NCBI GenBank assembly: GCA_002269645.1
Contig: NIVC01001149.1
Span: 186,001 to 250,000, forward strand
Reading direction: 5' to 3'
Length of the DNA: 64,000 bases
From: Macrostomum lignano
Taxonomy: Eukaryota
Position numbers and translations under genes: made by a program. Below the pieces are notes generated by a model that saw only the letters and a list, made by a program, of their open reading frames with translations, searched no databases and was not told where the DNA came from. The number at the start of each line of letters is the position of its first letter. Within the stretch, counting starts at the first letter, position 1. Below are positions 7,263 through 63,815 of this stretch, in pieces.

Positions 7263-7301
<39 letters not shown>

Positions 7302-7378: not shown

Positions 7379-7437
<59 letters not shown>

Positions 7438-7584
7438 GTCTGTCTGTCTGTGTGCCTGTCTTCTTGTATCTCTGTGTCTGTCTGTCGTGTTTCTGTTCTG
7501 TCTGTCTGTCTGTCTGTGTGCCTGTCTTCTTGTATCTCTGTGTCTGTCTGTCGTGTGTCTGTTCTGTCTGTCTGTCTGTCTGCC

Positions 7585-7661
<77 letters not shown>

Positions 7662-7678
7662 GTCTGTCTGTCTGTCTA

Positions 7679-7712
<34 letters not shown>

Positions 7713-15934: not shown

Positions 15935-16665
15935 CTGGGGTGGGGGAAACAGGTGAGTGGGATGGGGCAGCGCTGTCAGCAAGTTGAACTCAAATTTTGG
16001 GAATACGGTACAAGGGTCTATGAAAATTGGTTCAGCTGTGTCAGGGAAACCAATTTTTGGTCAAATGTTTGCACTTTTATGGAGGCTACTTTGAACTCTA
16101 TTAAATGTTTTTTGTCTTTAGGGAAGTTGAGATGCTAAGTCTACTATCCAAATAGGACTGTTGCTGCTATTGTTAATACACTAAAACTAGACTAAGCTTT
16201 TTCAAATACCAGTTTAAGCCATGTCATGATGGACATTAAAAATTTTATAAACAAACATAATCTAATACAAAGATGCAGGTTTCTTCCTACACAATTTTAA
16301 TATGTTGCCTATATTATAAATCATACAAACTTTTATTGCAGTCACATATGCTTTTAAAAACTATCAATATTCTTGTTGACTATAACAGGGGGTTAGACAA
16401 TATAGAATTTTTGAGATTTTTACTACAATATGACAACAATATGACATGAGATTTAATCGACATTTTGAGATATTTCATTTAAATAAGACAAAGGTAAAAA
16501 CTGAAAATAGCAGTTCTCTTTGTACAACTTTTTATATTTTTGAAAAACAAATGTAAACTTTGTGCACTTTTGTTGAAGATCAGAACCTTTAATTTGTAAA
16601 AAAAACATGATAATTTTTGGGTGCATCACTTTTCCAGACACAGTTCAATCCCTTATTAAGTAGGG

Positions 16666-25370: not shown

Positions 25371-25534
25371 TCCCAAATAGCAAGTAGCAAGTGCAAATGT
25401 TACCTATTAATGCAGGATTAATGCCATAATCGCTTTCTCAGGTTGTGCAACAATCCACATCTCAGCAAGCGAAATAATCTCTTTTAGACAGCGCAATAAT
25501 CAGCTTCTCGGCTAGTGCAATAATCCTTTCTAAT

Positions 25535-25970
25535 CTAGTGCAATATTCCTTGGTTTATCAAGTGCAATAGCCCTTGGCTTAACAAGTGCAATAATTTTTA
25601 GTTTATCAAAGGCAGTAAGCCTTGGTTTATCAAGCGCAGTAATTCTTGGTTTATCAAGCGCAGTAATCCTTGGTTTATCAAGTGCAATAGTCTTTGGCTT
25701 ATCAAGTGCAATAATCCTTGGCTTATCAAGTGCAATAATCCATGGCTTATCAAGCGCAGTAATCCATGGCTTATCAAGCGCAGTAATCCTTGGTTTATCA
25801 AGTGCAATAATCCTTGGCTTATCAAGTGCAATAATCCTTGGCTTATCAAGTGCAATAATCCTTGGCTCATCAAGTGCAATAATCCTTGGCTTATCAAGTG
25901 CAATAATCCTTGGCTTATCAAGTGCAATAATCCTTGGCTTATCAAGTGCAATAATCCTTGGCTTATTTTC
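25535..25970. repeat. 24-bp minisatellite (ttatcaagtgcaataatccttggc)
   Basis: About 18 tandem units just upstream of the zinc-finger gene. Confidence 0.92.
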
Positions 25971-26121
25971 ATATTTTCGATACATATCGGCTTTATTTCT
26001 CTGGTTTCATACTATTGATATATACAGTATTGGCTGTATTCCCACAGTTATGTATTTTTCGATACATATCGGCTTTATTTCTCTAATTTCATTTTTGCCA
26101 CAATTCCTGCCGTCTCAACTG

Positions 26122-30723: not shown

Positions 30724-30869
30724 GTTGACTGGCAGCCTGTGGCAACTGTTGTAAAGATATGATATATGATAGTTAGCATTTTTGTTTTGCTTCATTGTAA
30801 TAGCTTGGTGTTTGACTGTGTGGTTTGACAGGTTCCTATTAATAGTAATGACTCTGTCAATAAGTGTTT

Positions 30870-31850
30870 CATAATGTACTTGTCAGGTGTCATGATGTAA
30901 CTGTCAGGTGTCATTATGTACTTGTCAGGTGTCATTATGTACTTGTCAGGTGTCATGATGTAACTGTCAGGTGTCATTATGTACTTGTCAGGTGTCATGA
31001 TGTAACTGTCAGGTGTCATTATGTACTTGTCAGGTGTCATTATGTAACTGTCAGGTGTCATGATGTAACTGTCAGGTGTCATTATGTACTTGTCAGGTGC
31101 CATGATGTAACTGTCAGGTGTCATGATGTAGCTGTCAGGTGTCATTATGTACCTGTCAGGTGTCATGATGTAAATGTCAGGTGTCATGATGTAACTGTCA
31201 GGTGTCATTATATACTTGTCAGGTGTTTTTATGAAATTGTCAGGTGTCATTATGTAACTGTCAGGTGTCATGATGTAACTGTCAGGTGTCATTATGTAAC
31301 TGTCAGGTGTCATGGTGTAACTGTCAGGTGTCATTATGTACTTGTCAAGTGTCATGTACTTTTCAGGTGTCATTGTGTACTTGTTACGTGTCATTATGTA
31401 CTTGTCAGGTGTCATTATGTACTTGTCAGGTGTCATTGTGTACTTGTCAAGTGTCATTATGTACTTGTCAGGTGTCATTATGTAACTGTCAGGTGTCATG
31501 ATGTAACTGTCAGGTGTCATTATGTACTTGTCAGGTGTCATTATGTACTTGTCAAGTGTCATTATTTACTTGTCAGGTGTCATTATGTACTTGTCAAGTG
31601 TCATTATTTACTTGTCAGGTGTCATTATGTACTTGTCAGGTGTCATTATGTACCTGTCAGGTGTCAGTATGTACTTGTCAAGTGTCATTATTTACTTGTC
31701 AGGTGTCATTATGTACCTCTCAGGTGTCATTATGTACTTGTCAGGTGTCATTATGTACCTGTCAGGTGTCATTATGTACTTGTCAGGTGTCATTATGTAC
31801 CTGTCAGGTGTCATTATGTACTTGTCAAGTGTCATTTACTTGTCAGTTGA
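30870..31850. repeat. 21-bp minisatellite (gtcaggtgtcattatgtactt)
   Basis: About 46 tandem units just 3' of the zinc-finger stop codon. Confidence 0.95.
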
Positions 31851-32319
31851 CCTACCTGTCCGGTTAAACAGGTAGTTTTAGTCGGAGGACTTACTTTATA
31901 AAAGCTACATTGTCCAGATAAATTAATGCAACGCCTTAATACTGTACAAAACTAAGTTGAATTCAGTTTAGTGGAATGTTTCGCTGTATTTGCATATTTA
32001 TTGTTTGTATTACAACATTTTGAATTTTGATTGCCCTATTGAAGCTGCAACGAATGTACGGTACAAAAGCAGTCAATTCTGCTTAATCATGCCAAGTCCG
32101 CATTGGTATTAGTTTTATGGATTTGAAATTCTGTATTTATTCACTCTGTTAACCCTCCGTGCTTAATGGTGCCTTCTGGGGTCGATTTAAGAGCATAAAG
32201 AAAGTCCGACCGAGAACACAAATAGCTGTTTAAGGGCTTGCAAATTTTTTTGCGGAGAAGTCCCTGATAGGTTTAAATAGAGATGGAAACAAGCAGTTAT
32301 AAACACAATTATCAAGAGT

Positions 32320-32755
32320 GCTGTCTATGGCAGTGGGAGAATTATGGAGAGTGCTGTCTATGGCAGTGGGAGAATATGGAAAGTGCTGTCTATGGCAGTG
32401 GGAGAATTATGGAGAGTGCTGTCTATGGCAGTGGGAGAATGTGGAGAGTGCTGTCTATGGCAGCGGGAGAATATGGAGAGTGCTGTCTATCGCAGCGGGA
32501 GAATATGGAGAGTGCTGTCTGTGGCAGTGGGAGAATGTGGAGAGTGCTGTCTGTGGCAGTGGGAGAATGTAGAGAGTGCTGTCTATGGCAACGGGAGAAT
32601 GTGGAGAGTGCTGTCTGTGGCAGTGGGAGAATGTGGAGAGTGCTGTCTATGGCAGTGGGAGAATGTGGAGAGTGCTGTCTGTGGCAGTGGGAGAATGTGG
32701 AGAGTGCTGTCTATGGCAGTGGGAGAATGTAGAGAGTGCTGTCTATGGCAACGGT
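32320..32755. repeat. 32-bp minisatellite (ggagagtgctgtctatggcagtgggagaatgt)
   Basis: About 13 tandem units. Confidence 0.92.
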
Positions 32756-33779
32756 GAATACTTACTGAGATTTTCCGCTGGCAAAGCACAAGAAGGATAG
32801 GCAAGGGGTACAGGCTAAGTAAAGTACATGACAATATTTAATTTAATTCATTCTGCAATGTTGCTTTGACAAACAAAATCTCACCTATGCGCACTTGAGC
32901 ACAATGAATCAATTAAACTTGCAGTTTGTTTGAATAGTCCCTAATCTAACTGTACAATGTTAATATTATTTATACCTGTATCAGTTAAATGTTTTAGCAA
33001 TTATAAAGAATCTAGTTAATTGTTGAATAAGTCGTTAGCTTCAATTACCTGGCGCTGTTTTTTTTCTGCTTCGTTATATTTGGCACCGCTACTCGCTATA
33101 TCTATCTGTCTGCTTGTGTTTTGCTTCAATATTTGCCAAATTGACTATAAATAGTTGCTTGTAAAATTGTATGTTTCAATTTTCAAATAAACCTCGCTCC
33201 TTGTGTGGTATTGTTTGTACTTTTAAATCTGAATTTGACCGTCCACCTGAATTGCAAATGGTTATTGTTAAACTTTCAATTTAGTTTCAAAATGTACTTT
33301 AAAATGGTCTCATTGTTAAATACTAGCTCATATCTGGGACTATAGAGTTTCCTATTATGCACAATGTTCAATAATAGGGAACTTTGTCTTTGTAAGCCCA
33401 ACCATGCTTACTAGGTAACTTCGGTTTTAATCAGACCAGTTTGTACGAGTGCAAAGGTTCAGATAAACCTGTCACTGCTTCGTTTTGGTGTAGGCTTACA
33501 AGCTACTAGTAAATTTTATCTGTTAGCTAAACAAGCAATATATACATTTGGTACGATAAATGACAAGTAAAACTGTAAATTTTATACTAATCTTTTCGAT
33601 TTGGCATTATTCAGACAGATCCTGGCTAGTAATGTTACAGATAGCAGTTCAACAGCAGCATAAACATTTCATTTTAGTCGGGGCTGTAAGCTGGTACTAT
33701 TGCATTTTCTAAGTCATTGAAGCCTAGGAGTAAACAGTTGAATCCTTAGTGAGAGGAGGGTGGGGCGATCGAAGACTTG

Positions 33780-35285: not shown

Positions 35286-38200
35286 ATGCTATTGTTGGAT
35301 TTCAGCGAACTGCTTGAGAAGAAGCTGAGCGGAGAGCGATGGAGTGAAGAGGACGTGAAGCTGCTTGTGCGGCTGGTGAGCTCAGGCCGGCTGTCCGGAC
35401 AGCAAATCGGAGCAGTGCTCATGCTCATCTTCACCAAAGGCATGGACGCGGAGGAGATTGTTCAACTCACCTCGGCCATGACTGCTTCGGGGGAGACTCT
35501 GTCCTGGCCTGACAGCCTGAGACCATTGGTGCGTTTTCTGTCTGATGTTCTGACCCTAAACTACTCGAGTGTATGCAAATCACTGCAATCCAAAAGCTCA
35601 ATTGCGCTTTCTGTTATTTATGGTAGCTACATGTACTCCTCATATTCATTCTTGTTCACCAAATGCGGAATACGCTTGTAAAACAAAACGATAGGACGAT
35701 TGTAAAATAGATATAAAATTAAAATTTTTCTTTTAAACTTAGGGGTTCCGTTCCGGTGATTTTGAATGGACATGAATTATGACTATAGAGTTACATTATT
35801 TTTACTCCGCTAACACGCTACCTGCCAATTTGAATGCCCCCGGCAGGTGGTGGACAAGCACAGCACCGGAGGCGTCGGCGACATGGTCAGCCCACCGATG
35901 GTGGCATCACTGACCGCCCTCGGCCTCAAGCTGCCGATGATCTCCGGCCGGTCGCTCGGCCATACTGGTGGCACCATCGACAAGATGGAGTCGATTCCCG
36001 GCTTCAACGCCAGCCTGACAGCCGAGCAGATGCGCGGCGCCGTCATGTCGGACGTTGGTGGCTTCATCGCCGGCCAGACCGAGGCGATGGTGCCCGCCGA
36101 CCGCGTGCTGTACGCGGCCAGGTCGGAGACCGCCACCATCCGGTCCGTGCCGCTCATCACCAGCTCAATCCTGAGCAAGAAGGCCGCCGAGGGCATCTCC
36201 GCCCTGGTGATGGACGTGAAGTTCGGCCGCGCCGCCTTCATGACCACTTTTGAGGAGGCTCGGATCCTGGCCGAGTCCATTGTGAGATCATATTTGCGTC
36301 AATCGTTACATGTAGTTTAGGTGAAACACGTACATGTACAATAATTGCACTGCGGATTTTGTCTCTTTCATTAGTAAGGCTGCACAAGGTCGTCAACGAT
36401 TCCTCCCAAAAGGTGTGCTTTTGAGCAACGATTTTGAGTCTGTTGAAGTTCTCGTCCATTTGCAGCCTGAACGACCGATGGAAACTAATATACTTGCCAA
36501 AAAGTTAGCCTCAAATCTTTTTAACAATACGATCGTTCGACATCCGTGACGGCGCAACAAAAATTGTCAGTGGACAGACTTCCTACCCTTTGGCAGTTCA
36601 CTTGTGAGCATGAACTGTTCTACACTGAAAGAACTCTCTCATCCAACTGCTTAAGGAGCAAACCGGACGCGGCTACGGCATGAAAGTGATAGTGTTCATC
36701 ACCGAGATGGAGCGGCCGCTCGCCCGCTGCATCGGCAACGCCGTCGAGGTGGCCGAAGCTCTGCAGGTGCTGAATGGAGGCGACGCGGCCTCGGCCGGCC
36801 TGCGCGAGCTGGTGGCGCGCCAAAGCGGCTGCCTGCTGCGCCTGACCGGCAAAGTCGCAACGGACGAGGCCGGTGCTGCGGCGGTGCGCAACTCTTGGAG
36901 CGACGGCTCGGCGCTGAAGGCGATGCGGCGCATCCTGGTGAACCAGGGCGTCTCCGAGGCGCTGGCCGACAAGCTGTGCGAGCGGGGCCAGTTCAGCGTG
37001 CAGGAGTACCTGAGCCGGATGGGCCGGGAGCCGCTGTCTGTTACTCAGCTGAGCAGTCCCGCTTCCGGTGAGTGCATTGTACTCAGGGGAGCTCAAATCC
37101 GCTAAGTCACTAAGTTTAGCAATTTGTCAAGAGTGATCCAGCTGCGCCTTGAGTAGTTCATCAACAGGTTGGTGATCAGGATAACCGTAAAATATATAGT
37201 AAAAGTACAACTTAAGGACTTTTGGACCATCATTGGCCTGGAGGTTTGTTGTGCGGTTTCACAGTCACGAAGGCCGGCCCCAAGGCGCAGAGAGTCTACA
37301 AAACATGCCTGATGATTAGAAAGTCAGAGCCGATGTACACCCTTAGTGAGCGTGTGTATGAACGCGTGCTTTGTACATTATGTGCTCATGGGGTGGCGGA
37401 ATGGACAGAATTGTCATGACCTATCGTTGTGGGACGATGTCGCCAAAAGGTGTAGCGCCACCTCAAATTTATAATGGGGCCCTTCCCCTCCCCAGTGATA
37501 GATCCTGGCTACACTCTTGATGCTAAAACGAGTCACTTCATGCTCATGCACGCTCAAGGCTCCTTCAAATGAATTTTAATCACCAAAGACATTGTTTACT
37601 AAGTTCACCCCAGGAGGCCCTACATATAGTTCGTAGGATTGCCTTCGAATGAAGCCTACTACAAGAGTTATAGGTGTTCACAAGGTGGACTTTAAAGGCA
37701 AATTAACTTGATACCACAAATGAAAGCAACATTCAGAACTCGAAGAGGCAAAAGCATTCATGCCTTATGACGGCACACGCTCACACAGGGTGAACAGCGG
37801 CATGGGAGGCCATGACTGTGAGTCGTCGTGATTCAGGAGTAAGACGCGTTTACCGCTGAGGCACTCTGCCTCATAACCACATGCTAGGATAAATGCTACA
37901 TGCTACGAATGCCCTTTGATTGCAGGTTTCGTGTCGGACATTGACGCCCTGTCTCTGGCCAAGATCTGCCATCAGCTCAGCAGGCCGGAGCGTCTCGGTG
38001 GCAAGCTGGATCATTCAACCGGACTCGAGCTGCTGGTTGTCAAGGGTGACGCTGTTAAACAGGGTACGTTTTTGTCTGAGCTAAACTGTAGTAGGAAGCT
38101 TCCAAATTTTAGACCGAGTCAGTGTAGGTAAAAATCAATTTCATTAAAGCCGCTGAATCAATTTACGAAGAATTTTTCTAATTTTTAAAAAAAATACTTT

Positions 38201-39641: not shown

Positions 39642-41376
39642 ATGGCTAGCAATTTTCATGAGGATGCCGTTGACTTTCTTGACGACTCACCGGCTTTGAC
39701 CAGTGATAACAGCGCCAGCGAGTACGCAAGCATTGATGGCGAGGTGGATGAAGAAGATGGCCAGAGTGACGTGGAAGGCTCTCAGGTAGAAGAAGCTTTG
39801 ATTGAAAATGGATGGAATTTCGTTCAGGAGGGCGAAGACTCGCGTCTCCGGGATGCGCCAGAATTCCTCGGAGTGCCCGGTCTGAACCCGGATCTATTAG
39901 CCCAAGCGCCGGAAAACACAATGACTCGGATCGAATTCTTCCTCTAGCACTTTATTACCTCTGATCTGGTGTCTGCCATTCGATTTTGGACCAATGCTCG
40001 AGCTGATTTCGAGCTCCAAAACATTGCAACTGAGGCTGATGGACCTCTTCCCCCCTTAATATCATCTTGGAGACAATGCACCGAAAACGAAGTGAGGAAA
40101 TGTCTCGCCATTGTCCTGTACATGGGTCTAGTGAAGAAGCCCGAATTGCACATGTATTGGTCGACTGGCGATTTCTACGGTGGTGAATATTTTCAAAAAG
40201 AGCATTGCCTCGGAAGGGATCGGTTCATTCAGATCTTGTCATTCCTCCGATTCTACGACTGCACCGCAGTAAATAATCACCAGGATTCCCTGAAGAAAAT
40301 CAGGCCATTTTTAGACATTGCGCGATGGTATTTGCCAAGCCAACTACTGCCCGAATCAGGACGTTTCAGTAGATGAAGAGTTGGTCATGTACAAAGGCAG
40401 ACTCATTTTCCGACAGTTCATGCCCAACAAGCGCGCCAGGTTCGGCATAAAGGTCTACTGTCTCACAGAGGCTTCCACCGGATTTCTGTGGAACTTCCGT
40501 GTGCATGCTGTCAAGCAGGACAACGACAGGTTTGGAGAAGGAGTGAACTGCGGGAATTTATCTTTCAGTGAAAAGATTGTTGTCGAGCTAAGCAAGGACT
40601 TGCTGGGCTTGGACTACCGGATCTACTGTGACAGCTGGTTCACGTCGCTTCGCCTAGCTCAGTTTCTGCTCGAACGTAATACCATGCTGACAGGAACCGT
40701 GAGAGTCGACCGAGGCATCCCCAACGAGCTAAAGGTGCTGGCACTGCAACCCATAAGTCACTCTCACATGCGCCGAGACGATGTTCTTGCCGTCAAGCTC
40801 GTTGACAGAAAGGCCAGTGGTCGCAAAACTGTCTACCTTTTGGACACCCACGGCGTCGCTGGAAGCACGGAAGTGAGGCGAGTAATTCGAGGCGGCGTGG
40901 TGGAGACAGTTTTGAAGCCCAACTCATTGCTGCAGTACAACAAGAGTATGGGAGGCGTCGATCGCCTTGACGCAGCGCTACAACCCTACAGTGCAGGAAG
41001 AAGGACGCACAGGTGGCACCAGAAGCTCGGGTTTCATATTTTGCTTCAGTTGGTGCGCAATGCTTGGATTTGTTACTGCCATTCTGGCAACTGCATGAAG
41101 TTCTTAGACTTCTTGGAGGCCACGATCCGCCTTCTGATGGAGCAGACGGGTCGGGGAAAGCGGCAGAACACATCGAAGCGTCGAGCTGCCTCGCTGCATA
41201 CCCCATCCAAACTACCACCGACAGAGGCCAATATGAGACCGACTAAGCGGTGCAGAGTCTGCTATGGAAACGGCTCGGCCAAGCGAACTGTCTACGTGTG
41301 CGATGCTTGCCCTGGAGAGCCTGGACTTTGCGCAGCTCCTTGCTTTCAGAGCTGGCACACTGCCGCGGGGAACTGA
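39642..41376 (+). pseudogene. piggyBac-family (PGBD-like) transposase with one in-frame TAG and one frameshift
   Basis: Acidic N-terminus; catalytic-type motifs VSVDEE, YCDSWFTS and GGVDRLD; KRARFGIKVY; C-terminal Cys-rich domain RCRVC...CDAC...LC..PCFQSWH. Lesions are TAG at 39945-39947 and a +1 shift near 40326. TTAA/TIR ends were not found. Confidence 0.92.
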
Positions 41377-42766: not shown

Positions 42767-45566
42767 TCAGCTAATTTCCAACATTAGACGAATACTTCTC
42801 AGCATTGGTCTACTGATCGTGAATCCCACATAGTCAGCTGCGTAAAGCCACTGCATATTTCTCGAACTGTTCCATCTGCTGCCGATCTCCGACAAGTTAA
42901 AGTAGCCGTTTGGATTGACGTAGGTGCAGCTGTCGTACCACCATCCAGCGTTACTATTCTGTCTTGAGCAGCGAGAATTCGACCCCGAGTCCATTGTTGA
43001 GAAGGTCAGATTGTTGTTGTAGGAGAATGCGTCCTTAGAGGTGTTGGAGCTGCCGGGCAGGTAACCGCTGACACTCAGCCTGTACCGCGTGCTGGCGCTG
43101 CCAACCGAGAAGTGAGAGTACTCGCACACGTACAGCTTGCCGTTCTGATGGTTGCGAGCTTCCATTCGAAACAGGCGCGGCGTTGCGCCACTCAGACTGT
43201 GGATCTTCTGCAGGCCTGCAGTTGTATTAGTTGGTGATGTTGCGGCCCGAAAAGCATCCGACATTATTTTTTTTTATTAGAGGCAGGGGGGTTGTGTGCA
43301 CCCTGGCGCACTTTAAGCGACATGGGCACACAACCGGCGAGAGGCATTACTGCCCATTCCGCCGACTCCCCTGAGCAGGCATACAAGCGCGTGGATACGT
43401 ACGAAGGCACGCACTCACACAGGAGTGTACAGCGGCCCTAATTTTATATTATCGTTAGGCATGTACACTTCACTGCGCCTTGGGGGTTGGCTCTCAAGGC
43501 CGTTAATTGGACGAGCAGAGCAAAGCCGAGATTCCAATTCAAGTGCAATGACTGCACTTGGAATCGAGCCTGGGTCGCTGGCACACCAGAGCAGCTGCGC
43601 TACCGCTGGGCTACGGCCCCCCTAAGCATCCGACATACTCGAAATACAAGACAATACATGTAGCTGTGTGCTGGGAGTTCCCCACTTTCTAAGCGATTCA
43701 CTTAGCTGTGAAGAGATTGACTAGCTACTTGATCCAACAATATTTTGCTAATAAAACTTTGAATCGACGTAAGAAATGGTCAGAAGACGTATGAGCATTA
43801 TGGAAAATCAAAGAGCTAAAATGGCAAAAGTCTTGCAATGTCATAAATGCCTTGCGTAAGAGGGCGAGCCTTTGTGTGAATATAATCCAAAGCATAAGAA
43901 ACTGTGGGACAGAATCAGCCAGCTGCTAGAAGTTGATGAAACAGTGAATTCCCACCTGTCTCAGTGGTGTTGGATAGTTGCCTGCAGCGTTAGCAGCAGC
44001 ACCTCCAATACTGTTTTGGTTGTACAGGACTTATTGCATATGCTTCCAACTTCTTGCTATTGATCTTGTGATGGAAACTGTTGGGTGACTACACTCCTAG
44101 CTCATAAAAAAAGTATTACAGAAGAATACAACTCCCTAAACTGAAGGACTCACTTGATGTTTTTCGATAGCATAACTAATTCAGAAGCTGAAAGGACCAA
44201 TTTGAATTTTGGATGCTTGATAAACTTGCAAACTTAAGGAGCGTTCACTGCGTCATCGAATAAAATGATCACACATTTTGTGCAAAATGACGACAGAATT
44301 TTTATGTCATGCGAGCAGGCAGAATAGTGAACTGCTGCTAAAAAGCGCTCAGAAATTATATACTAATAACGCATTCGCAAAAACCGAAACCGAAATTTCA
44401 AATTTCAAATTTCTTAATTTCAATGTCATAATATCATCAAACCTGAGTTCTCGGCACTGCAATGATGTAGTGCAGAGCAGCCGCAGCTGAGCTGATTTCC
44501 AGTCTGCCGACACCATCAGCGGACCGACCTCGAACCGAGCACTCAACGAAGAGCTCACCGATCTCTCAGCAGTCCACAGCCGCATGAAATCGACCGAGAG
44601 AGGCGACAAGTCGGCCAACTGAGTCCTCACATCATCGCGTGTGGCCTCATCTTGCAGTACCAGATCCAGCTTCAGGTAGTGCATGTCTCGGCTGTAGTCA
44701 TACCTGACTGACTCGCTGCTCAAGCTGGAGATGTTGTGGCACAGAAGAGGCTCGATGAGGAAGTGACCCTTCATGTCGAGTCTCTGGTGCACTCGGGCAG
44801 AGCAGTTCTCGAGATTGACGGTGCGGCTGAATTTCAGCTGTCGGCATGTCATCAGGGGTGAGAATCTTTGTGCGTTTATCTCTGAGTCGAGGAGGATGTC
44901 ATTCTGCAGCCGGAGGCGACTCTGAACATCGTGGCAGGAGCCGTTTGCAATGATTGAAGCTGTTAGCTTCACTTTTTCAAGAGCTTCTCGGGGTGAATTT
45001 CTAAGGCCAGCACTGTTCTTCTGACTGTGCGCGCATTGCATTGGAAGAATGTTTTCAATTAACCATGTCTTTGGAACTCGACTTGAATTGTCCTCCGAGC
45101 TGATGTTTTTCAATCTGAGAGTGGCGACTGGCTCATCCGGAGTCCACAGGACGCCCAAAGCCCGAATCTATGAGCGGGTGTCGGCTGAGACGCTGATGTT
45201 GGTCACCGTGGCGAAGCTCACAGACCTCGGTGACAGATGCCGCAGTTGACGCTGAGCCTCTGCGAGCATCCCAGCGTCCCGCATCAATACAGGAACGCTG
45301 AAGTACATCTGCTGGGTGATGAAGTCGAATCGGGGAACAATGCCTCTCAGGCTGTCCGTCACGCACATGAGTGGCTCGACTGCCAAGTGCGGACCGTCGC
45401 TCGCTCCCGTGTCGTGCACGAACAGCGCGCAGCCGTTCACGCTGAGCTGCGCCACGAAGCGGAGCCTTGGAGAGTCAGCGGGGGCGCACTGGGAGACCTG
45501 GCCGGCTGCCAGCGAGCAGAGCAGCAGAGCCAGCAAAGTTTTGAAAAGCAAATTTAGTTGCTCCAT
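42767..45566 (-). pseudogene. FReD-cluster paralogue 1 (signal peptide + tandem unknown domain + FReD), apparently disrupted
   Basis: One frame from 45566 to 44443 is homologous to paralogues 2 and 3 but has a TAG at 45170-45168. The donor is at 44442. The FReD C-terminal exon is 43215-42767 (FSTMD...GWWYDSCTYVNPNG). The exon for the first half of the FReD was not found. Confidence 0.7.
43265..43623 (-). mobile_element. tRNA-derived SINE (family B) with poly(A) tail and 13-bp TSD
   Basis: The minus strand begins GGGGGCCGTAGCCCAGCGG...GGCTCGATTCC (A and B boxes) and ends AATAAAAAAAAAATA. It is flanked by AAGCATCCGACAT at 43252-43264 and 43624-43636. Confidence 0.9.
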
Positions 45567-45974
45567 TATCTTTGTTTGTGAGAATTGAAGACTCTACAAT
45601 CTGCTTTGTGTTTAAAGATGTGTAGAATTTTACAAACGCGTTTTAAAATAGGTTGAATTGCACTTCATCTTTGCTGTTAGCATTCTTTTATTTATTATAG
45701 TCTGCAATTTAGAAATGCGAGACAAAGGGGAACACTATAGAAAGTTTTGAATAAATAAATGCTCTATAATTAGGAAGAGACGCTTTAAAAACATATCTAT
45801 TTTTAATCTGCAAGAGCTTCTAATTGCTTATTCAGATACAGGATGCTACTGCAGAATTTCAGCGCGATCAAGTTCAGGGGTTATTTTTATACTATCAAGT
45901 GAGCTTCGGAAGTCTCGAAAGTAAACCCTGGAGGCCGGGTCGAGCTATAGTTGATAAAAGGTGAAGGAGAACTC

Positions 45975-46175
45975 TGTTTACAGTGCTTACAGTGTTTACA
46001 GTGCTTACAGTGCTTCCAGTGCTTACAGTGCTTCCAGTGCTTACAGTGCTTCCAGTGCTTACAGTGCTTACAGTGCTTACAGTGCTTACAGTGCTTACAG
46101 TGCTTCCAGTGCTTACAGTGCTTACAGTGCTTACAGTGCTTACAGTGCTTACAGTGCTTACAGTGCTTACAGTGC
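45975..46175. repeat. 9-bp microsatellite (cagtgctta)n
   Basis: About 22 tandem units between FReD paralogues 1 and 2. Confidence 0.95.
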
Positions 46176-46888
46176 TAGCAGAGACTTTGAGGTTGCCCTT
46201 AGCTTCGCAATTCAACAACAGCTTCGAACCTAACTGCTACATGTACCTGCATGTACTGACAGTGACGTATATCAAACTACAATTCATTGTCAGAGGATAA
46301 AAACAAGGCTAAATATTGTAAAATTTATTTACTATATGGCTAACTAATTTTTTATGAGAACTTTGTTGACAAATTAACTCAGAATTATCTTTATTCAATT
46401 ATCGGACTTTCTAAATCCAATAGACTCAAAAGGCTACAGATCTTTATACTTAAAGACGCGATTCACAAAATCTATGTGATGCAACAGACATGGCTCTTAA
46501 TTGTCTCTCTGTGCTCAAGCAGACTTTATCAGACTGAGTCTTCTAAGCATTTGGACGAGTTTGACGCTTTTCAGATCGGTAATTGAAAAAGCCTCACTCA
46601 ATTGTTAGCACAGGACGCAGCAGTAGTGCAACTCGAGTATAGACATTATTCAATTTTATTTAATCAATTTCTATTTATCAAAAAAAGACTTTTAAAAGAC
46701 TTCTTAAAGTACAATGACCAATTAAATTTGCTATTTTGAATCAGGCAAAAAAGAGATGACGATTACTCAGTTAATCATAGAAAAATTTTGTATATTAACA
46801 ATGCAGATTAGATTAGATGCCTTCAGATTAAGAGATATTTAGACATTATTGCTGAGCATTTGTGAGAATTCATTTGTTTCTTTTCCTG

Positions 46889-48942
46889 TCAAATCTGGAG
46901 CAGCAGTAGTACTTGGCGAAGTGCCAGCCACCGGCGACGCGAAAACCAAGACATGTACGCATCGTCCGAAGTCTCACGGGTGGAAAAAATCCCGTTTGGG
47001 TTGAAGTGCATGCAGTTGTTGAACCACCAGCCACCTTTGCCGTAGCCGTCGGAGCACGACTCACTGCGCCTGTCGTTGTCTGCGTCCATGGTGGAAAACC
47101 GGGACCGATTGCTGTGCTCCATGGCGTCCCAGCTGACGGTGGACCTCTCCGGCAGCATCTCTCGGTACGTCATCCGGTACCTGGAGCTGGCGTCGCCCAC
47201 CTGGAATCCCGCGTACTCCGCATGCAACTCAGAGCCGTTCCACAGCCTCATCTCCACTCTGAGGGTGGCGCCACCTGTGCTTAGCAGACTAATTGCAGAT
47301 AGACCTGAAAGTGCAACAAAAGCTACTGGAACTACAGCTTAGGCCTTATACAATTTCAGGATGGATAAATTTACTAAAATAACAAAAAACGAACCAATCC
47401 AAAAGTCGGTGTCGTGGCCAAAGCCAGTCTCGTATTCCGCCCACGTTCGCTGGAAGCTGACGCTTCCACTCACCCTCTGCTGGATGGTCACGAACCATCT
47501 GCCGTCAGGTAAACTGCGAAACGTCTCGAAGGAAACAATTTTGGATCGCAATAGGCTGGGAATATTGCGGCAGGAGTTGTAGGTTGAGCAGGAAGGCGAA
47601 CTGCCAATCGTTTTCATTCTCCAAGACGAAAGATGCTTATGGGACATCAATAAGCACTGATTCGCCACCAGAGAGGATGTCCGCCATTTTAGATGTCGCC
47701 ACAAGTCAACAGGCTCCGACAGAGCAGAAAATCTAAAACAAGAGGCAATTTTCCTGTCATTCAATATGGACTAAAAAATTGCATTTAACTGCAGCGCCAA
47801 CCTGGCAGCGCCACACTGGTTTAAGGACGAGCAGTACAGCCGCAGCTGAGCGGACCTCCAGTTTGCCGACACCATTAGCGGACCGACCTCGAACCGGGCA
47901 CTCAACGAAGAGCTCACCGATCTCTCAGCAGTCCACAGCCGCATGAACTCCACTGAGAGAGGCGAAAAATCAGCCAGTTTAGTTCTCACAGTCTGAAGTG
48001 ATGCTTCATCCTGCACTAAAAGGTTCAGCTTGAGATAATATTTGCCGCGGCTGAAGTCATATCTGATTGACTCGCTGCTCAAGCTGGAGATGTTGTAGCA
48101 CAGCAGAGGCTCGATAAGGAAGTGGCCCTTGATGTCGAGTCTCTGGTGCACTCGAACAGAGCAGTTCTCCAGACTGATGGAACGAATGAATCTCAGTTGT
48201 CGACATGAAGGCAGGGGACAGTACCTTAATCTGTACTCACTGGGGTCAAAGAAGCTGTGATTTTGAGTCGATACTCGGTACTGGTAGGTCTGGTAGGTTC
48301 CGTTGAGAAAAAGCTTCGTCGATAAGCGAATTCGCTGAAGGGATTCGACCGATGATAGCTGCAGTTCTGATCTGAGCAGGATGGTTCAGGTTTGTTCGAA
48401 TCTTCACTATAATGATATGTAAATGAGCCAACTTAATTTTTCAAAACTTACGAGAGCTCATATGCACTTCTGTCCATATCTGTTTCGATTCTTAGATCTC
48501 CAACGGACTCATGTGGACTCCAGATAAAAGCAATAGAACGAACAGTGGAGTTAGCATCTGTGGAAGCATTGACTTCTGACACAGCCGCAAAGGTCACAGA
48601 CTTTGGTGATAGATGTTGCAGCTGACGCTGAGCTTCTGCCAGCATCCCATCATCCGTCATCAACACAGGAATGCTCACGTACATCTGCTGGGTGATTAGG
48701 TCCACTTTCGGACTCAGAGACTTTAAGCTTCGCGTCACGCACATGAGCGGCTCGACTGCCAAGTGCGGACCGTCGCTCGCTCCCGTGTCGTGCACGAACA
48801 GCGCGCAGCCGTTCACGCTGAGCTGCGCCACGAAGCGGAGCCGTAGAGAAGAGGCAGCGGGAGCGCACTGGGAGACCTGGCCGCTGACTCCCAGATAGAA
48901 GTACAGCAGTGACAGTGCTGCATTTTTGAGTGACATTTTCAT
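46889..48942 (-). CDS. FReD-cluster paralogue 2: secreted ~604-aa protein with two copies of an unrecognised domain and a fibrinogen C-terminal domain
   Basis: Exons 48942-48452, 48371-47802, 47732-47395 and 47304-46889 total 1815 nt with GT..AG ends and consistent phases. Signal peptide [21 protein letters not shown]. FReD motifs [21 protein letters not shown]...[14 protein letters not shown] and [13 protein letters not shown]. Confidence 0.85.
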
Positions 48943-50009: not shown

Positions 50010-52245
50010 TCATAACTGCACCATCAGCCGAACAAGCCGAATGGACATCCATCTGTCAGAGTGCCACAGCATGTACTTCAGGTTTATTGTCGGGCTGGTC
50101 GGGAACAGCCCATTTGGATTGAAATGGTAGCAGCTATTGAACCACCAGCCACCTCCGCCATATGCATTGGAGCAGGACTTCCTACGGTCTCTGTCATTGT
50201 CCACATTGATGGTAGAAAACTGCATGCCTTTGTGGTACTGCATTGCATCGTGTTTGGCGTTAGACTTGTCCCTCAGCATCTCACGGTACGTCATCCGATA
50301 CATGGAGCCGACGCCTTCAACTGTAAAGTTCGAGTACTCCGCGTACCACTCGGTGCCGTTCCACAGCTTCATCTCCACTCGAAGGGTGGCGCCGCCGTCG
50401 GTAAGCGAGGCAATTCTGTTCAGACCTGCAATGTCAATGAAGGGCGAATTCACGTTTGTTAATATTTGATTTGCTTTTTATGGGCTGGTGCGATTTGAAA
50501 TGTTTAATAGTATTTAGAAGTATTGAAAGCACTGACAATATTTGAACGCTGAATTTCGCGTGTAGTTTCATTTTTACACTGGTAGCCCCTGGGACTCTTG
50601 CCGCGGCTAAGCCAAGATAAGTCTGACAAAAGATTCTCAAAAGCAACTCAGATTTTATCATACAGAAACAATAAAGAAAAACTTTTTAATGTTGAGACAT
50701 CGTACCGATCCAGAAGTTGTTTTCATTCCCGAATCCGCGGATGTACGACGCCAGAGTGCGCCGAAAACTTTCCTCGGCCGAGACTCTCTGCTGTATAATG
50801 AAAAACCATCTGCCATCTGCGAGCCTTTTTAGCTTGCCAAAACTCAGGTCTCCACTCCGAGCAAGACTGCGAAGATAGGCGCAGCTTGCGGAGCGGCTGC
50901 AACTGATGGCGTCGGTGGAGCTTTCCGTCTTCCCAGAGGAGACGGTCGAGTCCGACTTGAAGAGGCAATCCGAATTAACAATTGACGTTGGATGCCAATT
51001 GATATGATACCAAAAAGCAAATGGATCTTTTGTCATTACATTGGACCTAAAATGTGTTGTAGTTTTATGGTTTTTTGTTTTAAAATACTAAAAAATCCGG
51101 ACATAATACTATAGAGGCAATAATTACTTCAGATTGGTGCACTGTTTTATACTCCTGCAGTACAGCCGCAGCTGAGCGAACTTCCAGTCTGCCGACACCA
51201 TCAGCGGACCGACCTCGAACCGAGAGCTCAACAAAGAGCTCACCGATCTCTCAACAGCCCACAGCCGCATAAACTCGACTGAGCGAGGCGACAATTCGGC
51301 CAGCTGTGTCCTCACGGCATCGAGTGTGGTCTCATCTTGCAGCACGAGATCCAGCTTCAGGTAGTGCATGTTTCTGCCGTAGTCATATTCAACTGGTCCG
51401 TATGTTGACTTATCGACGCTCCAGAGTAGAGGCTCAATATAATAGGCACCCCTAGAATCGAGTCGCTGAAATACTCGAACTTGACGGTTTCTGTGGTGCA
51501 TTAAATGTACAAATTTAATGTCTGAGCAAGTTTCCAATTCGTATCTGGCACTTAAGAGAGACAGTTCCGTGAATCCGCGGTTTCGCGCCACTGGGCGCAG
51601 AGTGACTTGTCGAAATTTGCGATTTGATAAAATGGTGGCCGTGAGTTGCACCTGGTCTAAGGCGTCGGTAGGCGACGTTTCTCGTCTAGAAATTGATTAG
51701 TTTAATATTGGTTTTGTCAAAAATTGCCTAAAATATTTTTCTACCAAAAAGGACTCTAAATACACTCACGTCATCATCATCAGAGCCGCTTCTGTGTTAT
51801 TTATTCCTATTTTTAGAACACCAGCCGAGTGATTTGAACTCCACTCGAACCCAATAACGCTAGACTTGGTTGCCAAAGCTCCTATATTAGTGACAGTAGC
51901 GAAGCGAACGGGCTTTAGAGAAACGTTTCGCAGCTGCAGCCCAGCTTGGGCAAGCATGTGGGTATCCCATAGAAGCACCGGGACTCGGATGTACAAAATC
52001 TGCGAAATCAGATCGAGTTTCAAAGGCTGCTTTTCGATGGCACCAGTGACGCACATGATAGGCTCGATCTCCAGTGCATGCTCTCCCGAGTCGTATACAA
52101 CCAGCGGACAGCCGCTCACGTTGAGCTGGGTCACAAAGCGCGGCTTGGATGAGGCAGTTGGAGCTCTCTGAGGAAGCTGAGCAGCTACCAGCGAGCAGAA
52201 AATTAGAAGCAGTGCAGCCACTGCCACTTGGGCTGCGGAACTCAT
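50010..52245 (-). CDS. FReD-cluster paralogue 3: secreted ~596-aa protein with the same architecture
   Basis: Exons 52245-51770, 51685-51128, 51046-50706 and 50425-50010 total 1791 nt with the same intron phases (2,2,1) as paralogue 2. Signal peptide MSSAAQVAVAALLLIFCSLVAA. FReD motifs FWIGL, FSTINVDND and GGWWFNSCYHFNPNG. Confidence 0.85.
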
Positions 52246-54718: not shown

Positions 54719-57700
54719 ATGAAGCTGAAAGCCAAGCGGTCCGAGCCGCTGCAGCTGCTTCTGTGCCAGCTGCTCACGGGTGAGTCTGAATGGAAATGGT
54801 GCCACCTTGATGGAGACTCACTCACTGCTCACTCACACTCCTTTCAGCTGTGGCCTCCGCCGTAGACCCCAGCGCCGTCACCAGAGGCTTCTACCATCGG
54901 GTGACCAGCGGCTTCATCGGCATCGGCAGCTACGTGAGCAGCGAGCTGCTCAACGAGACGGGTGTTCGATCAGATGTTCTCTGCCTGTGGAAGTGCTGGG
55001 CAACGTCATGCGTTGTCGCAGTCGTCAAGGAAGCCGCGATCCTCGAATGCCAGGTGCTCGTCATCAACAATGCGAGCGAGCCGGGCTTGAGCAGCAGCAG
55101 CTTTGTTGCCAGGGAGATTCGGCTTGAGGACGGCGTGCAGATCTGGAAGGCTGGCGACTTTGAGCAGCAGCTGCTCAGAGGCACCGACGCCGCGCGCCCA
55201 CTCGGTGAGTTTGTGAAATTGGCTGATGGAGTTCATGATTCAGCATTCATGCAAACGCACCCGCATCATCTGATGCTTACTCAAAGCTCAGTTTTGAAGA
55301 AAGCTGTTTCAGCCTTAATTCCTATCGAATCCAACCCCGAATATCCATCTCACAGCGTACCTGGATTCTAAGAACGTGACTCACAAGCGGGTCCACATTC
55401 CCAACAACTCGGTGAAGATTATCGCCGCCTTTCTTCAGCACCAGTCGGCTGTCTCATCGCTCGTTGGCTGCGTTGACAAGTGCAGCGAGGTGCCGGACTG
55501 TCGCGGGATTGTGTTCAACTCCAGCAACTGCTCTCTGCTCACCGACTACCCGCTGTGCCGCTGGTTCGAGCAGCCTCCGAACAGCTCTGAGCTGGCCGTC
55601 TATGTGAGTGTTGGGAAAGGAAGCTTTTTGGCGTCACGTCACTGCTGAGTAAAGCATGTCTGCATTGATGACGATCGAGTTCCGGATGTTCCGGGTTCGG
55701 TTTCTGTGCCAGCGAGCAGTTTCTCTGAGCAGCTCAGCGGCTCGCGCGCCACGACCCTTGGGCCTTGGTTCGATTCTGTGTGCGGCCGCATTAATTTGGC
55801 CTTGTTCTCAGAAATTAGCTGAGGGGTCTTTTCTCTGATTTCCACACATGCCGGCCGACACTTCACAGACACATGCCGGCCGACACTTCACAGACACATG
55901 CGTGCCGACACTTCACAGACACATGCCGGCCGACACTTCACAGACACATGCGTGCCGACACTTCACAGACACATGCCGGCCGACACTTCACAGACACATG
56001 CGTGCCGACACTTCACAGACACATGCCGGCCGACACTTCACAGACACATGCGTGCCGACACTTCACAGACACATGCCGGCCGACACTTCACAGACACATG
56101 CGTGCCGACACTTCACAGACACATGCCGGCCGACATTTCACAGACACATGCCGGCCGACATTTCACAGACACATGCGTGACAGTTAGAAATTTAACAAGC
56201 CGCTTTTCATCCTGGACGTGTGCACGCGTGTTTGAGTGGCGTTCCTGCGTACACCATCTCTCAGTTTGAATGAATGTACGAGCTAAGGAGTCAGCAGTGT
56301 AACTGTCATACCAAGGACGAATTCAGTAGGACGGGAAACCTCGTTTCTTGGAATAATTTTGAAGGCAGGTTTTTCAAAAAAATTCAGTGCGGAGACAGAA
56401 AGTTTTCATTTCTTAGCAAAAAAATTGTTATTGCTTTAGATAGGAGGCAGATCCAGTGTTCATCTTTTGATATGCTGTTATTGCTGTTTTGTTTTTTTGT
56501 TTTTTCGCAATGTTGTTGGGGCTTCTGTCTCGGGCAAACTCGGTTCACTAAAGTTGCAGGAACGCATTCCACAGCCGGCGTCCGGCCTCCGGCTCTCGAC
56601 AGAGGTCACTCAGGCTGGTCACGCCGAGTTGTCGCCGTACTCGGTTCAGGGCAGGGCAGCCTTGTTATTGCTGTCTTATTGCTCTATCGATATTCATAAA
56701 GCTTTTCGTTCAGAAAAATAGTTTTCTATGCCATTTTTCCACGTAAATTTGCACGTGTCTTGTGCCTAAAAACCATTAAAATGGCACAGCTCGGCTCTTT
56801 GGTTTTATTAGTGTATTTTGTTATTCTTATCTGACTGTTTAAATACGGAGTATGCTTAACAGAGATTATAAAATCGATTCAGAAAACCAAAAATTGGAGC
56901 TGTGCCAAGCATTTTTATGATTTTTAGGTACAGGAAATGCACATAGAATAAGAAGAGAGCATAGAATCCTATTTTTTTAACGAAAAGCTTCAGAATATCG
57001 ATAGAGCAACAAGAAAGACACAAAATATCAAAAGATGAACACTGGATCTGCCTCCTAACAAAAACGAAAACATTTTTTTCTGAAAAACCTGCTTTCAAAA
57101 ATTTTTCAGGAATCGAGGTTTCCCGTCCTTTTACTTGAGTCGTCCTGGAGTCATACATTTAGCTGCCTCAACGCTGCGGGACGTCCGATGCTACCGAAAG
57201 TGTTTGTTCAAGGATTCCACAAGTCTTATGCCAATAGTTATGTGAAAGTTGCTAGCAGTTATAAATGCTTTTGTTGCATGAGTTTAATTTAAACAAGGCT
57301 GTAAAAGTATTTTGATTGCTTTCTGGATCAACAGCTAACATCTCTGACAGTCCACATCGATTTCTATCACAAGAAAAATACTTTAAAGATTTCACGAAAC
57401 CGCAAACGCAGGAGTTCTACACTGTGGGCACTCAGCAGTGCTTCCAGACCGTCAACCTGCGAGTGTCGGACGCGCTGAGCTTCGACCGGCTCTGGGCCGA
57501 GTACAAGACCGGCTTCGGCACTTATCACGGCAACTACTTTACTGGTGAGTCACTTGGGGCTCTTTTACTTGAGTTTCTGGTCGTATGCGCACTGTGTTTT
57601 TCATAGTAGAAAGTAAGTATTATTTATTTTTTAACTTATTGAGATCATTGGTAAATTTTGAATACTTTCGGAATTCAGAAATGTGATATGTACTTGAAAA

Positions 57701-61580: not shown

Positions 61581-61974
61581 CTAGAGGGACCTTACAAGTC
61601 CAAAAGAGTCTGCAGAGAGGATAGGATAAGACGCGAGAAGAGTGACAGTTACTGAGAAGCATCTAAGCATTTGCAACTACGCCTACGAATTCTCATTAGG
61701 CACGAGAGCCTATTGAGACAGTATTAGAAATACCCGCTACTCAGAATCCAAAGATAGGCGTAAATCTGACCAGTTGATACAGGCAGGCGCGAATAATGAG
61801 CGGCATTGATCTGTGAAATCTATTATTTTTGTCTATTTGCTTAAATGAGCTTCTTTATTAATTGCGTCGAGCGGTACATTTGGCTTATGCGCGCATTACA
61901 TGCAGTAGCATTTAGCCTAGGTACTGCCGAAGCTGTGCGGCCGTATCATCGGTTGCATGGGATATCATGGTCTC

Positions 61975-62560
61975 TTCACCCCCAGGACTCTTCATTGTGT
62001 CCCCAGGACTCTTCATTGTGTCCCCAGGACTCTTCATTGTGTCCCCAGGACTCTTCATTGTGTCCCCAGGACTCTTCATTGTGTCCCCAGGACTCTTCAT
62101 TGTGTCCCCAGGACTCTTCATTGTGTCCCCAGGACTCTTCATTGTGTCCCCAGGACTCTTCATTGTGTCCCCAGGGCTCTTCATTGTGTCCCCAGGGCTC
62201 TTCATTGTGTCCCCAGGACTCTTCATTGTGTCAGAGCTCTTTGTTTTCCCTCAGCCTTCCTCTTGGTTTCCCAGAGCTTTTCATTGTGCCCCCAAGACTC
62301 CTCAATTGGGCCTCAGAGCTGCTCAACGGTGTCTCAGAGCACATCAATGGTGTCTCAGAGCTCCTCATGGTGTTTCAAAGCTCCTCATGGTGTGTCAAAG
62401 CTCTTCCTGGTGTCTCAGAGCTCCTCAGTGGTGTCTCAGGGCTCCTCAGTGGAGGCTCAGGGCTCCTCAGTGGAGTCTCAGGGCTCCTCGGTGGTGTCTC
62501 AGAGCTCCTCAATGGTGTCTCTGAGCTCCTCAGTGGAGTCTCAGGGCTCCCAAATGGCGC
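61975..62560. repeat. Two adjacent 21-bp minisatellites (ccccaggactcttcattgtgt; ggtgtctcagagctcctcagt)
   Basis: Arrays at 61975-62230 and 62320-62560. Confidence 0.9.
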
Positions 62561-63815
62561 TTTAGAGCTTCACATGGCGTTTCAAAAATGTGGTAAAGTG
62601 GTTCCCACCACTTCGAGGAGCGGAATATCGTTTTAGAAAGAACCAAGCATGGCTCAAAAATACAGCTTGAGTTAAATGGTGGTTCAAAATTAAGACACAA
62701 GAATCGAGCTAACGTTCAGCATGGACAACTAAAGCCACGAATTTACTTTAGTAGTCCTTGACGTTTCAAGGGTAAACAAATGTTTAGTTTCAGAATAAGT
62801 CAAGACGTACGACTCGCAATGGTTAGAATAACACAGCCATTTTGTGTTTGTAACACTTATCTCATTGAATGCTTTCCATGTACCAATCCCAAAGCAAGGG
62901 AAGGTACAGTTTTGTTGAGGTTAAATCCAGATTTTAGAATATATTATTTTTGTTAGGTAAATTTGTACTTCAAAGATACGTTTTTAACAACAGGGGCAGC
63001 TAGTGAAAACTGAAGTTTTAGAAAGAGCAATAGAACAGCATAGGTATATAAGGGCTAAAATTGAGTTCTATTGGACGGTAATTCAGAGCCGGCAGTCAAA
63101 GTTAAATAAAACGACAACATCAAGGCCTAGCATAGTAACATGACCTGTAGCCCGTACAATAGCGTAGCACATAATGTGTTACCTGTACTCTACACAGCGA
63201 GGGTGCTCACAGCCGACATAAAAACAGCTTTAGCTGGGATGCCACAAAAACTATGAAGAACAAAGAAAGCAGAAGAAAATCGAGAGAAACATGGTTGATA
63301 AACAATTATGAATAAGTTGATATTAAACATACAACACGATTTTGGTAGGAAAGCAGGACCAGTTGTGGAATGATTGGCAGGCAGTCAGAGAAATAAGGAG
63401 AATATAGTACGTTATAATAGCCATCATGGAATGCTGCATTATGACCTTTTTAGTAGTTTCTACAGATATATATTCACGTTAACAGTTGCTGTCGCTCCAC
63501 TGATAGAATAAAAAAGGTTCGTGACCAACTTGCCGATTTGTATACTTATTCGAATATCGCTTGGATAGAAACAGATATGAAATTGGTAAGAATTTGCTAT
63601 ATTTGACCGATGATTTTATATGCGTCTACAAAAACAAGAAAGTGGGGCTTAAAAAACGGCATTTAACAGAAAATCAAAAGTAAAACTCTCGAGTCAGCAA
63701 TCATTGACAAAGTATTATTAAAAAGCTTTTCAGCCACATGCCCTGTTTTGTTAAAGTGACTGACTGCGGCTCGTGAGTACAGCATCATCATCCGTTCTAA
63801 ATGGACAACCCGACG

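Follow-up and report, generated by a model that had tools for sequence, protein, structure and literature searches.

An apparently undescribed, exon-duplicated domain in the tandem fibrinogen-related genes of Macrostomum lignano

At 42.7-52.3 kb of a 64,000-nt stretch of the Macrostomum lignano genome (assembly GCA_002269645.1, contig NIVC01001149.1, positions 186,001 to 250,000 of the forward strand; hereafter the window), three genes lie in tandem on the minus strand, each encoding a protein with a fibrinogen-related domain at its C-terminus. The N-terminal part of these genes, termed paralogues 1, 2 and 3, quite probably encodes two copies per gene of an undescribed, Macrostomum-restricted alpha/beta domain that was spread by exon duplication and serves as the stalk of secreted lectins. 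Paralogue 2 (join(48942..48452, 48371..47802, 47732..47395, 47304..46889), minus strand) encodes 604 aa and paralogue 3 (join(52245..51770, 51685..51128, 51046..50706, 50425..50010), minus strand) 596 aa; in both genes, introns 1 and 2 are in phase 2 and intron 3 is in phase 1. A first-pass annotation, made from the letters of the window, had read the region 47802-48860 of paralogue 2 as two exon-delimited copies of one beta-rich, disulfide-stabilised module of ~130 aa. The peptides and coordinates that it gave were recovered on the minus strand, with 48860 just upstream of 'LRLRF' in copy 1 and 47802 as the final base of exon 2 (donor AG/GTTGGC; slashes mark splice junctions). When the N-terminal 302 residues of paralogue 2 were used for a protein search, seven proteins were found, all of them M. 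lignano UniRef/NCBI entries. Among these, P0001 is close to paralogue 2 and differs by a few substitutions and another splice choice, P0004 corresponds to paralogue 3, and P0002, P0003 and P0005 are similar to paralogue 1.

Comparison of copy 1 with copy 2 of paralogue 2 by BLASTP gave 29% identity over 106 aa (48.9 bits, E 4e-13), in the very alignment given by the first-pass annotation. In Smith-Waterman comparison, z was 20.3 for paralogue 2, 17.6 for paralogue 1 and 5.7 for paralogue 3, none of 2000 shuffles equalling the observed score. Profiles of the two copies were aligned by hhalign, using either the window paralogues and their close homologues (96.5% probability, E 9e-10, 88 columns) or the wider family (98.65%, E 4.9e-16, 156 columns). 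Two N-terminal copies of one domain, as annotated, are thus confirmed. A family hidden Markov model (HMM) run over the window detected exactly six cores, two per paralogue, and none elsewhere. Taken alone, the C-terminal third of the ~130-aa unit was not significant in pairwise comparison and became significant only with family profiles. The shared motif, LRF-x8-C-x3-VH...EPL(M/L)C...D...Y...L.D...L..SP.SV.F, was present as it had been written, and copy 2 of paralogue 3 was confirmed to lack the Cys pair, with R and W in its place. The duplication had been called old, which agrees with the identity of only about 25-30% between the copies; within one protein of the family, identity between copies was as low as 20-30%. 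Identity to paralogue 2 among the paralogues was 43-64% for copy 1 versus 54-74% for copy 2.

The extent of the unit was read from an alignment of 37 non-redundant copies, extracted with their downstream sequence. In multi-copy relatives the period is ~195-200 aa; in P0009, for example, copies start at 102, 302, 497, about 700, 891 and 1091 (period ~197 aa). Conservation was observed past ~130 aa, where 'LRLxC' is followed by a second Cys 5-6 residues on, by a helix-like 'L...L...P..lF..i.l' and by a final Cys. In paralogues 2 and 3, the family HMM placed the copy 1 tail at the beginning of exon 2 and the copy 2 tail at the beginning of exon 3; it found the tail in paralogue 1 too. The ~130 aa first assigned to the unit were therefore too few: it comprises ~165-170 aa, from a first Cys 8 residues before 'LRF' to a sixth Cys in the omitted tail.

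Six Cys columns (C1 to C6) are well populated across the 37 units. C2 and C3, which form the Cys pair of the first-pass annotation, stand or fall together without exception, nine units having lost both. The pair C4 and C5 is just as concordant; at least six units lack it, among them copy 1 of each window paralogue. For C1 and C6, joint loss was seen in five units and a mismatch in a single one, copy 1 of paralogue 2, in which C6 is Tyr. This covariation argues for a disulfide pattern of 1-6, 2-3 and 4-5, in line with the disulfide stabilisation that had been proposed. The putative C1-C6 bond would join the N-terminus to the tail, and the boundaries of the domain are therefore placed at about C1 and C6, which gives 161-165 residues in the window.

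The tail also bears on the splicing of paralogue 2. An acceptor for exon 2 at 48231/48230 (before 'LRYCPLPSC'), implicit in the first-pass annotation, leaves an open frame, yet it was dropped in favour of 48372/48371 because the 47 residues gained with the latter are present in the P0001 model and correspond to tail sequences elsewhere in the family; the earlier exon start was probably too far downstream. The junction 'YELS/SELQ' at intron 1 is identical in P0001. A third-frame reading of this intron ('...YRLKITASL...', resembling 'KVKLTASII' of paralogue 1) was considered coincidental, as a stop terminates it and its frame is not that of copy 2; a better alignment is given by the reading in frame.

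To AlphaFold2, copy 2 of paralogue 2 was given alone (190 aa) with an alignment of 29 diverse units, from which the row of paralogue 1 with a stop codon had been left out. The best model had a predicted local distance difference test score (pLDDT) of 91.3 and a predicted template modelling score of 0.83, and the five models ranged from 85 to 91 in pLDDT. It is confident from residue 1 to ~172, tail included, and consists of five strands, a helix, two strands, a short helix, two strands, a long helix (135-147 and 149-153) and two strands, the last of which holds C6 (residue 168). From this order of elements, the predicted domain is an alpha/beta domain of which the tail is an integral part. The earlier description as beta-rich does not fit this mixed model, with its 11 strands and 3-4 helices. 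A full-length AlphaFold2 run of mature paralogue 2 with an alignment of eight sequences reached a pLDDT of 33, with even the fibrinogen domain poorly modelled, and was discarded.

No described relative of the domain was found in the structure and profile searches. Foldseek comparison of the copy 2 model with 350,542 PDB chains gave no match at E ≤ 1e-3 (best E 0.046, best template modelling (TM) score 0.22); the top matches were antibody Fab fragments with TM 0.17-0.21 and a root-mean-square deviation (rmsd) of 8-18 Å, which were taken as noise. A profile search of all PDB sequences gave no match at E ≤ 10. With Pfam, the only match on the paralogue 2 protein was PF00147 (Fibrinogen_C) at the C-terminus (122.9 bits against a cut-off of 22, E 2.3e-35, residues 384-541 of a shorter 557-aa model), and nothing was found on the repeats at E ≤ 1. 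Run on the 29 separate units, Pfam returned five unrelated single-member matches (best E 0.033), and no family recurred. The suggestion of an undescribed domain was thus upheld, the two halves aligning significantly with each other and having no confident Pfam match. In the BFVD database, the sole Foldseek match was A0A7S7YF07, an uncharacterised 417-aa protein of Medusavirus stheno T3 (E 9.8e-4, probability 1.00, query-normalised TM 0.53, 171 columns, 13% identity, rmsd 4.3 Å). The viral structure is itself predicted, its TM is only 0.27 on its own 417-aa length, and the protein was not among the matches of the sequence profile search of 1.84 billion proteins described below. A relationship between the two would be an unproven lead that carries no functional content.

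An exhaustive HMMER search of 1.84 billion representative proteins, performed with a 9-sequence core profile, detected 16 proteins at E ≤ 1e-3. All matches with a named source were from M. lignano, and the others came from a transcript-like Logan contig, a further short Logan contig and a short JGI contig (P0013). A word-indexed search with the 29-unit profile returned two known members only among 8000 candidates and is uninformative on the wider distribution. Literature searches turned up neither these genes nor any fibrinogen-related proteins from Macrostomum.

Besides the new domain, Pfam found only Fibrinogen_C or Lectin_C in the relatives, and two architectures were recognised. The first consists of a signal peptide, one or two copies of the domain and a fibrinogen-related domain (the window genes, P0008, P0011, P0012, P0015, P0016 and P0017; Fibrinogen_C was found by Pfam in the last five). 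In the second, a C-type lectin domain follows a signal peptide and about six copies (P0009, P0010, P0022 and P0023); 4-6 copies and a C-terminal Lectin_C were detected in P0009 (1462 aa) and P0010 (1285 aa). P0009 is encoded by the intronless 4758-nt Logan contig L001 (SRR30276812), which holds at least six copies and the C-type lectin domain and looks like a transcript, as evidence of expression for the C-type lectin type. The N-terminal region of P0009 also contains a Ser/Thr/Pro-rich repeat ('PSATTDV') of mucin-like appearance.

The introns follow the repeat with a constant offset. In paralogues 2 and 3, those after copy 1 and after copy 2 are both in phase 2 and occupy homologous alignment positions; in copy 2 the intron lies 3 residues past C5 ('...C-x5-C-GAA/R' in paralogue 2), and in copy 1 it lies at the same position although C4 and C5 have been lost. 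In P0022, the M. lignano C-type lectin gene on NIVC01000671.1, five unit boundaries were resolved, all of them in phase 2 and at the same position, with the junctions 'LRIHCLSGRVCRTL/H', 'FRVLCQTWAACRDL/S', 'LRVACSSRAACEAL/V', 'LRLYCDRLAACAGL/R' and the Cys-less 'AAGAKAAEVL/R'; one additional phase-2 intron lies within unit 2. On the copy 2 model, the intron falls after residue 141, in the middle of helix 135-147, and ~27 residues up to C6 are left to the next exon. Since the intron lies inside the domain, exon 2 combines the copy 1 tail with the copy 2 core, and exon 3 holds the copy 2 tail together with the start of the fibrinogen domain. The term exon-delimited, used in the first-pass annotation, thus holds for the periodicity, in that same-phase introns occur at homologous positions, and fails for the boundaries, as the exons end within the domain. 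The conserved intron positions indicate that what was duplicated is a symmetric exon (phase 2-2, ~195 codons), out of register with the structural domain. Owing to this symmetry, copy number could change easily and the module could be transferred between the two kinds of head.

The repeats behave as coding sequence under purifying selection. Between the window paralogues, the ratio of non-synonymous to synonymous substitution rates (dN/dS) was 0.23-0.41 for the copy 1 core, 0.23-0.46 for the copy 2 core and 0.22 for the fibrinogen domain, and whole-domain values among the three paralogues gave no sign of diversifying selection.

These observations make the following arrangement quite probable. 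The N-terminal 380 residues of each tandem gene comprise a predicted signal peptide and two tandem, putatively extracellular domains of ~165-170 residues, each held by up to three predicted disulfides (C1-C6 across its ends, C2-C3 and C4-C5). The family probably grew by tandem duplication of the ~195-codon phase 2-2 exon, which is offset from the domain: it begins with the final ~30 residues of one copy and the linker behind them, and continues with the first ~135 residues of the next. The module stands before two unrelated glycan-binding heads, fibrinogen-related (one or two copies) or C-type lectin (about six). Both heads belong to families that typically bind glycans or acetyl groups. Because the window proteins have a signal-peptide-like N-terminus, Cys pairs of extracellular type and N-glycosylation sequons, and the family carries C-terminal domains of two glycan-binding types, they are putatively secreted lectins whose head would bind carbohydrate or acetyl-group ligands. 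The new domains might then act as a rigid stalk, stapled by disulfides, by which the heads are spaced, oriented or oligomerised; alternatively, they might offer a second binding or effector surface. A role as spacer, in oligomerisation or in effector docking appears somewhat more likely than a primary role in binding, and the lectins may have an immune, adhesive or reproductive role.

Several points weigh against this arrangement. The confident model is that of copy 2, the full-length prediction having a pLDDT of 33. Copy 1 of paralogue 2 has C1 and no C6, and the disulfide scheme is therefore not uniform; the copy 1 units of the window also lack C4 and C5. The transcript-like evidence concerns a C-type lectin relative and not the window genes, and paralogue 1 appears to be decaying, given its in-frame stop and the absence of the N-terminal half from its fibrinogen domain. 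Finally, sugar binding, oligomerisation and an immune role are candidate properties of the window proteins.

The new domains could instead be the main recognition part, that is, ligand-binding repeats to which the fibrinogen or C-type lectin head is accessory. This possibility is doubtful. The range in copy number from 1 to ~6, the divergence of copies within a protein to 20-30% identity, and the lower conservation of copy 1 than of copy 2 between the paralogues would all suit binding repeats; against them, dN/dS is below 0.5 over both copies, with no diversifying selection on the whole domain, and the fibrinogen heads retain a Cys pair and a 'DxDND' motif resembling a calcium site, as read from the sequence. 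It also seems unlikely that the domain is a very diverged member of a known extracellular fold, such as a SEA-like two-layer alpha/beta sandwich or a composite of two smaller known domains, which profiles and Foldseek against the PDB missed; in that case the family would be new but its superfamily known, and the domain type would not be novel. A model with a pLDDT of 91 found no PDB chain at E ≤ 1e-3 and no TM above 0.22, its top PDB matches were Fab fragments at the level of noise (rmsd > 8 Å), and no Pfam family recurred among the 29 units.

A resemblance of the halves by chance or composition, or frames that are not real coding sequence, is effectively refuted. In pairwise comparison, paralogue 3 gives a modest signal (z = 5.7) and the C-terminal third falls short of significance when taken alone, but the pairwise E of 4e-13, the profile E of 5e-16 and 0 of 2000 shuffles reaching the observed score speak against chance, as do the conserved position and phase of the introns, dN/dS below 0.5, and homologues both in annotated M. 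lignano proteins and in the intronless transcript-like contig. The features of the locus are collected in Table 1.

Table 1. Positions of the repeat units, introns and associated features of the three paralogues in the window
Feature	Position	Strand	Basis
Paralogue 2, start codon and predicted signal peptide	48880..48942	-	Hydrophobic N-terminus followed by 'QVSQC', read from sequence
Paralogue 2, copy 1 core (Cys26 to end of exon 1)	48452..48867	-	Family HMM positions 2-140, E 5e-50; BLASTP against copy 2
Paralogue 2, intron 1 (80 nt, GTAAGT...CAG, phase 2, within copy 1)	48372..48451	-	
Paralogue 2, copy 1 tail (C6 position = Tyr190)	48293..48371	-	HMM positions 140-193, E 1.4e-4; aligns with tails of other units
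Paralogue 2, linker between copies	48206..48292	-	Extra Cys in 'RYC', 5 residues before C1 of copy 2
Paralogue 2, copy 2 core (Cys220 to end of exon 2; C1-C5 all kept)	47802..48205	-	HMM positions 2-146, E 1e-56; AlphaFold2 pLDDT 91
Paralogue 2, intron 2 (69 nt, phase 2, 3 residues past C5, within copy 2)	47733..47801	-	Position and phase match introns of P0022
Paralogue 2, copy 2 tail (C6 = Cys380)	47654..47732	-	HMM positions 143-196, E 4e-8; high pLDDT to about model residue 172
Paralogue 2, fibrinogen-related domain (rest of exon 3 and exon 4)	46889..47593	-	Pfam PF00147
Paralogue 3, copy 1 (core in exon 1, tail in exon 2; intron 51686-51769, phase 2)	51613..52167	-	
Paralogue 3, copy 2 (core in exon 2, tail in exon 3; intron 51047-51127, phase 2)	50965..51528	-	
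Paralogue 1, copy 1 and tail (one continuous frame, in-frame TAG 45168-45170)	44934..45488	-	
Paralogue 1, copy 2 core	44443..44846	-	

The three paralogues differ in the state of their Cys residues and reading frames. In paralogue 2, the core of copy 1 keeps C1, C2 and C3, with C4 replaced by T and C5 by A, and the fibrinogen part is interrupted by a phase-1 intron (47305-47394) and ends with the stop codon at 46889-46891. The extra Cys in 'RYC' (48220-48232, residue ~215) is peculiar to paralogue 2, the protein in which C6 of copy 1 is lost, and may be a compensating partner for the orphan C1 of that copy. In paralogue 3, copy 1 has lost C1 and C6 together (R and F) as well as C4 and C5, and C2 and C3 of copy 2 are the pair replaced by R and W. 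In paralogue 1 (45566..44443, minus strand), both copies are read through with no intron between them, and the residue at its in-frame TAG is Ser in the M. lignano relatives. Downstream of its copy 2, an exon with the copy 2 tail and the N-terminal half of the fibrinogen domain was not found; a divergent exon for the C-terminal half of Fibrinogen_C lies 1.2 kb further on (43264-42770, minus strand; 35-37% identity to the other paralogues, Pfam E 5.9e-19). In the gap past paralogue 1, the stretch at ~43300-43660 (minus strand) has a tRNA-like start ('GGGGCCGTAGCCCAGCGGTAGCGCAGC...') followed by a poly-A run, which suggests an insertion of the short interspersed nuclear element type; no tRNA was called in it by ARAGORN. 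Paralogues 1 and 2 are 100% identical in nucleotide sequence over ~60-90 nt (~45360-45450 and 48740-48830, minus strand), with 43-87% in flanking windows, and this may be a short gene-conversion tract.

Elsewhere in the window, a tblastn match to the 'DGRWFV.IQQR...F.R.W..Y..GFG' part of fibrinogen was observed at 57409-57519 on the plus strand (46% over 37 aa, E 8e-7), which could represent a remnant, or a single exon, of a fourth fibrinogen-related gene. On the minus strand, the exons of a chromatin remodeller of the ISWI/SNF2 type occupy 10660-15982 (SNF2-rel_dom, E 2.8e-80, at 14927-15982; HAND, E 1.3e-14, at 10663-11250), with long CT-rich and AG-rich low-complexity arrays between them at ~11.5-13.8 kb. 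On the plus strand lie exons of a thymidine/pyrimidine-nucleoside phosphorylase-like gene (35286-37105; Glycos_transf_3, E 8.5e-28) and a piggyBac-like transposase open reading frame (ORF) at 39969-41376 (DDE_Tnp_1_7, E 2.3e-37; zf-Tnp_2, E 8.7e-9). The region 16-24 kb is AT-rich (GC 0.31-0.35). A weak RNase H-like ORF at 21035-22126 (minus strand; E 6.5e-4, under the Pfam cut-off), which adjoins another ORF, is probably a retroelement remnant. Long tandem arrays of minisatellite type were found at 5758-8184, 25530-25985, 27398-28102, 30792-31850, 32283-32757, 45895-46300 and 61845-62636; they yield spurious long ORFs in several frames. One of them separates paralogues 1 and 2 and contains the 'TVS' repeat (45.9-46.3 kb).

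Modular secreted lectins, in which a non-lectin stalk precedes a fibrinogen-related or C-type lectin head, are central in invertebrate innate immunity and have evolved repeatedly with varied stalks. As a kind of protein they are already known, and what is new here is the stalk domain, a mobile module common to fibrinogen-type and C-type lectin proteins. A model flatworm thereby provides a stalk domain outside the described families and solved structures, together with unusually clear genomic evidence of how a module spreads, one phase 2-2 exon per copy being offset from the domain. The defined unit, the alignment of 29-37 copies, the disulfide prediction and the confident model suffice to found a new domain family. 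Its practical importance is moderate, since lineage-restricted domains are common and we infer the function.

The heads of the window proteins belong to a known family, the C-terminal 200 residues of paralogues 2 and 3 being members of PF00147; that family covers only the C-terminal segment of the 557-aa model noted above, and the new N-terminal domains lie outside it. For the stalk, the FREPs and CREPs ('VIgL' proteins) of the snail Biomphalaria glabrata, which combine immunoglobulin superfamily (IgSF) domains with a fibrinogen-related or C-type lectin head, offer a close likeness. In both systems the genes are clustered in tandem, and their products open with a signal peptide, continue with one or two (or more) domains that are not lectins and end in a fibrinogen-related domain; in both, too, a C-type lectin head can be found behind the same kind of N-terminal module. 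The Macrostomum module differs in not being an IgSF domain. It is an alpha/beta domain of ~165 aa with three predicted disulfides, no immunoglobulin Pfam match was found on the protein or the 29 units, the Fab chains reached TM values of only 0.17-0.21, and the copy 2 model has 3-4 helices. A further difference is that nothing in the flatworm data points to somatic diversification or an immune role. More speculatively, and with a rather low probability, the domain might be a new fold that was invented in Macrostomum, multiplied by exon duplication as the non-lectin part of a lectin-based recognition system convergent with the FREPs and CREPs and with ficolins and collectins, and distantly related in structure to a giant-virus protein.

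Ficolins and collectins carry a collagen-like stalk and a fibrinogen-related or C-type lectin head. They resemble the Macrostomum proteins in that one type of stalk is combined with two kinds of glycan-binding head and the head is C-terminal in a protein that is secreted, or in Macrostomum predicted to be. The stalks themselves differ: no Gly-X-Y collagen run was present in the translated window models, nor any Collagen Pfam match, and no obvious coiled coil was seen by reading the sequence, the stalk here consisting of globular repeats. Because one module, in one to six copies, serves both kinds of head, the IgSF domains of FREPs and CREPs and the stalks of ficolins and collectins are its closest functional analogies.

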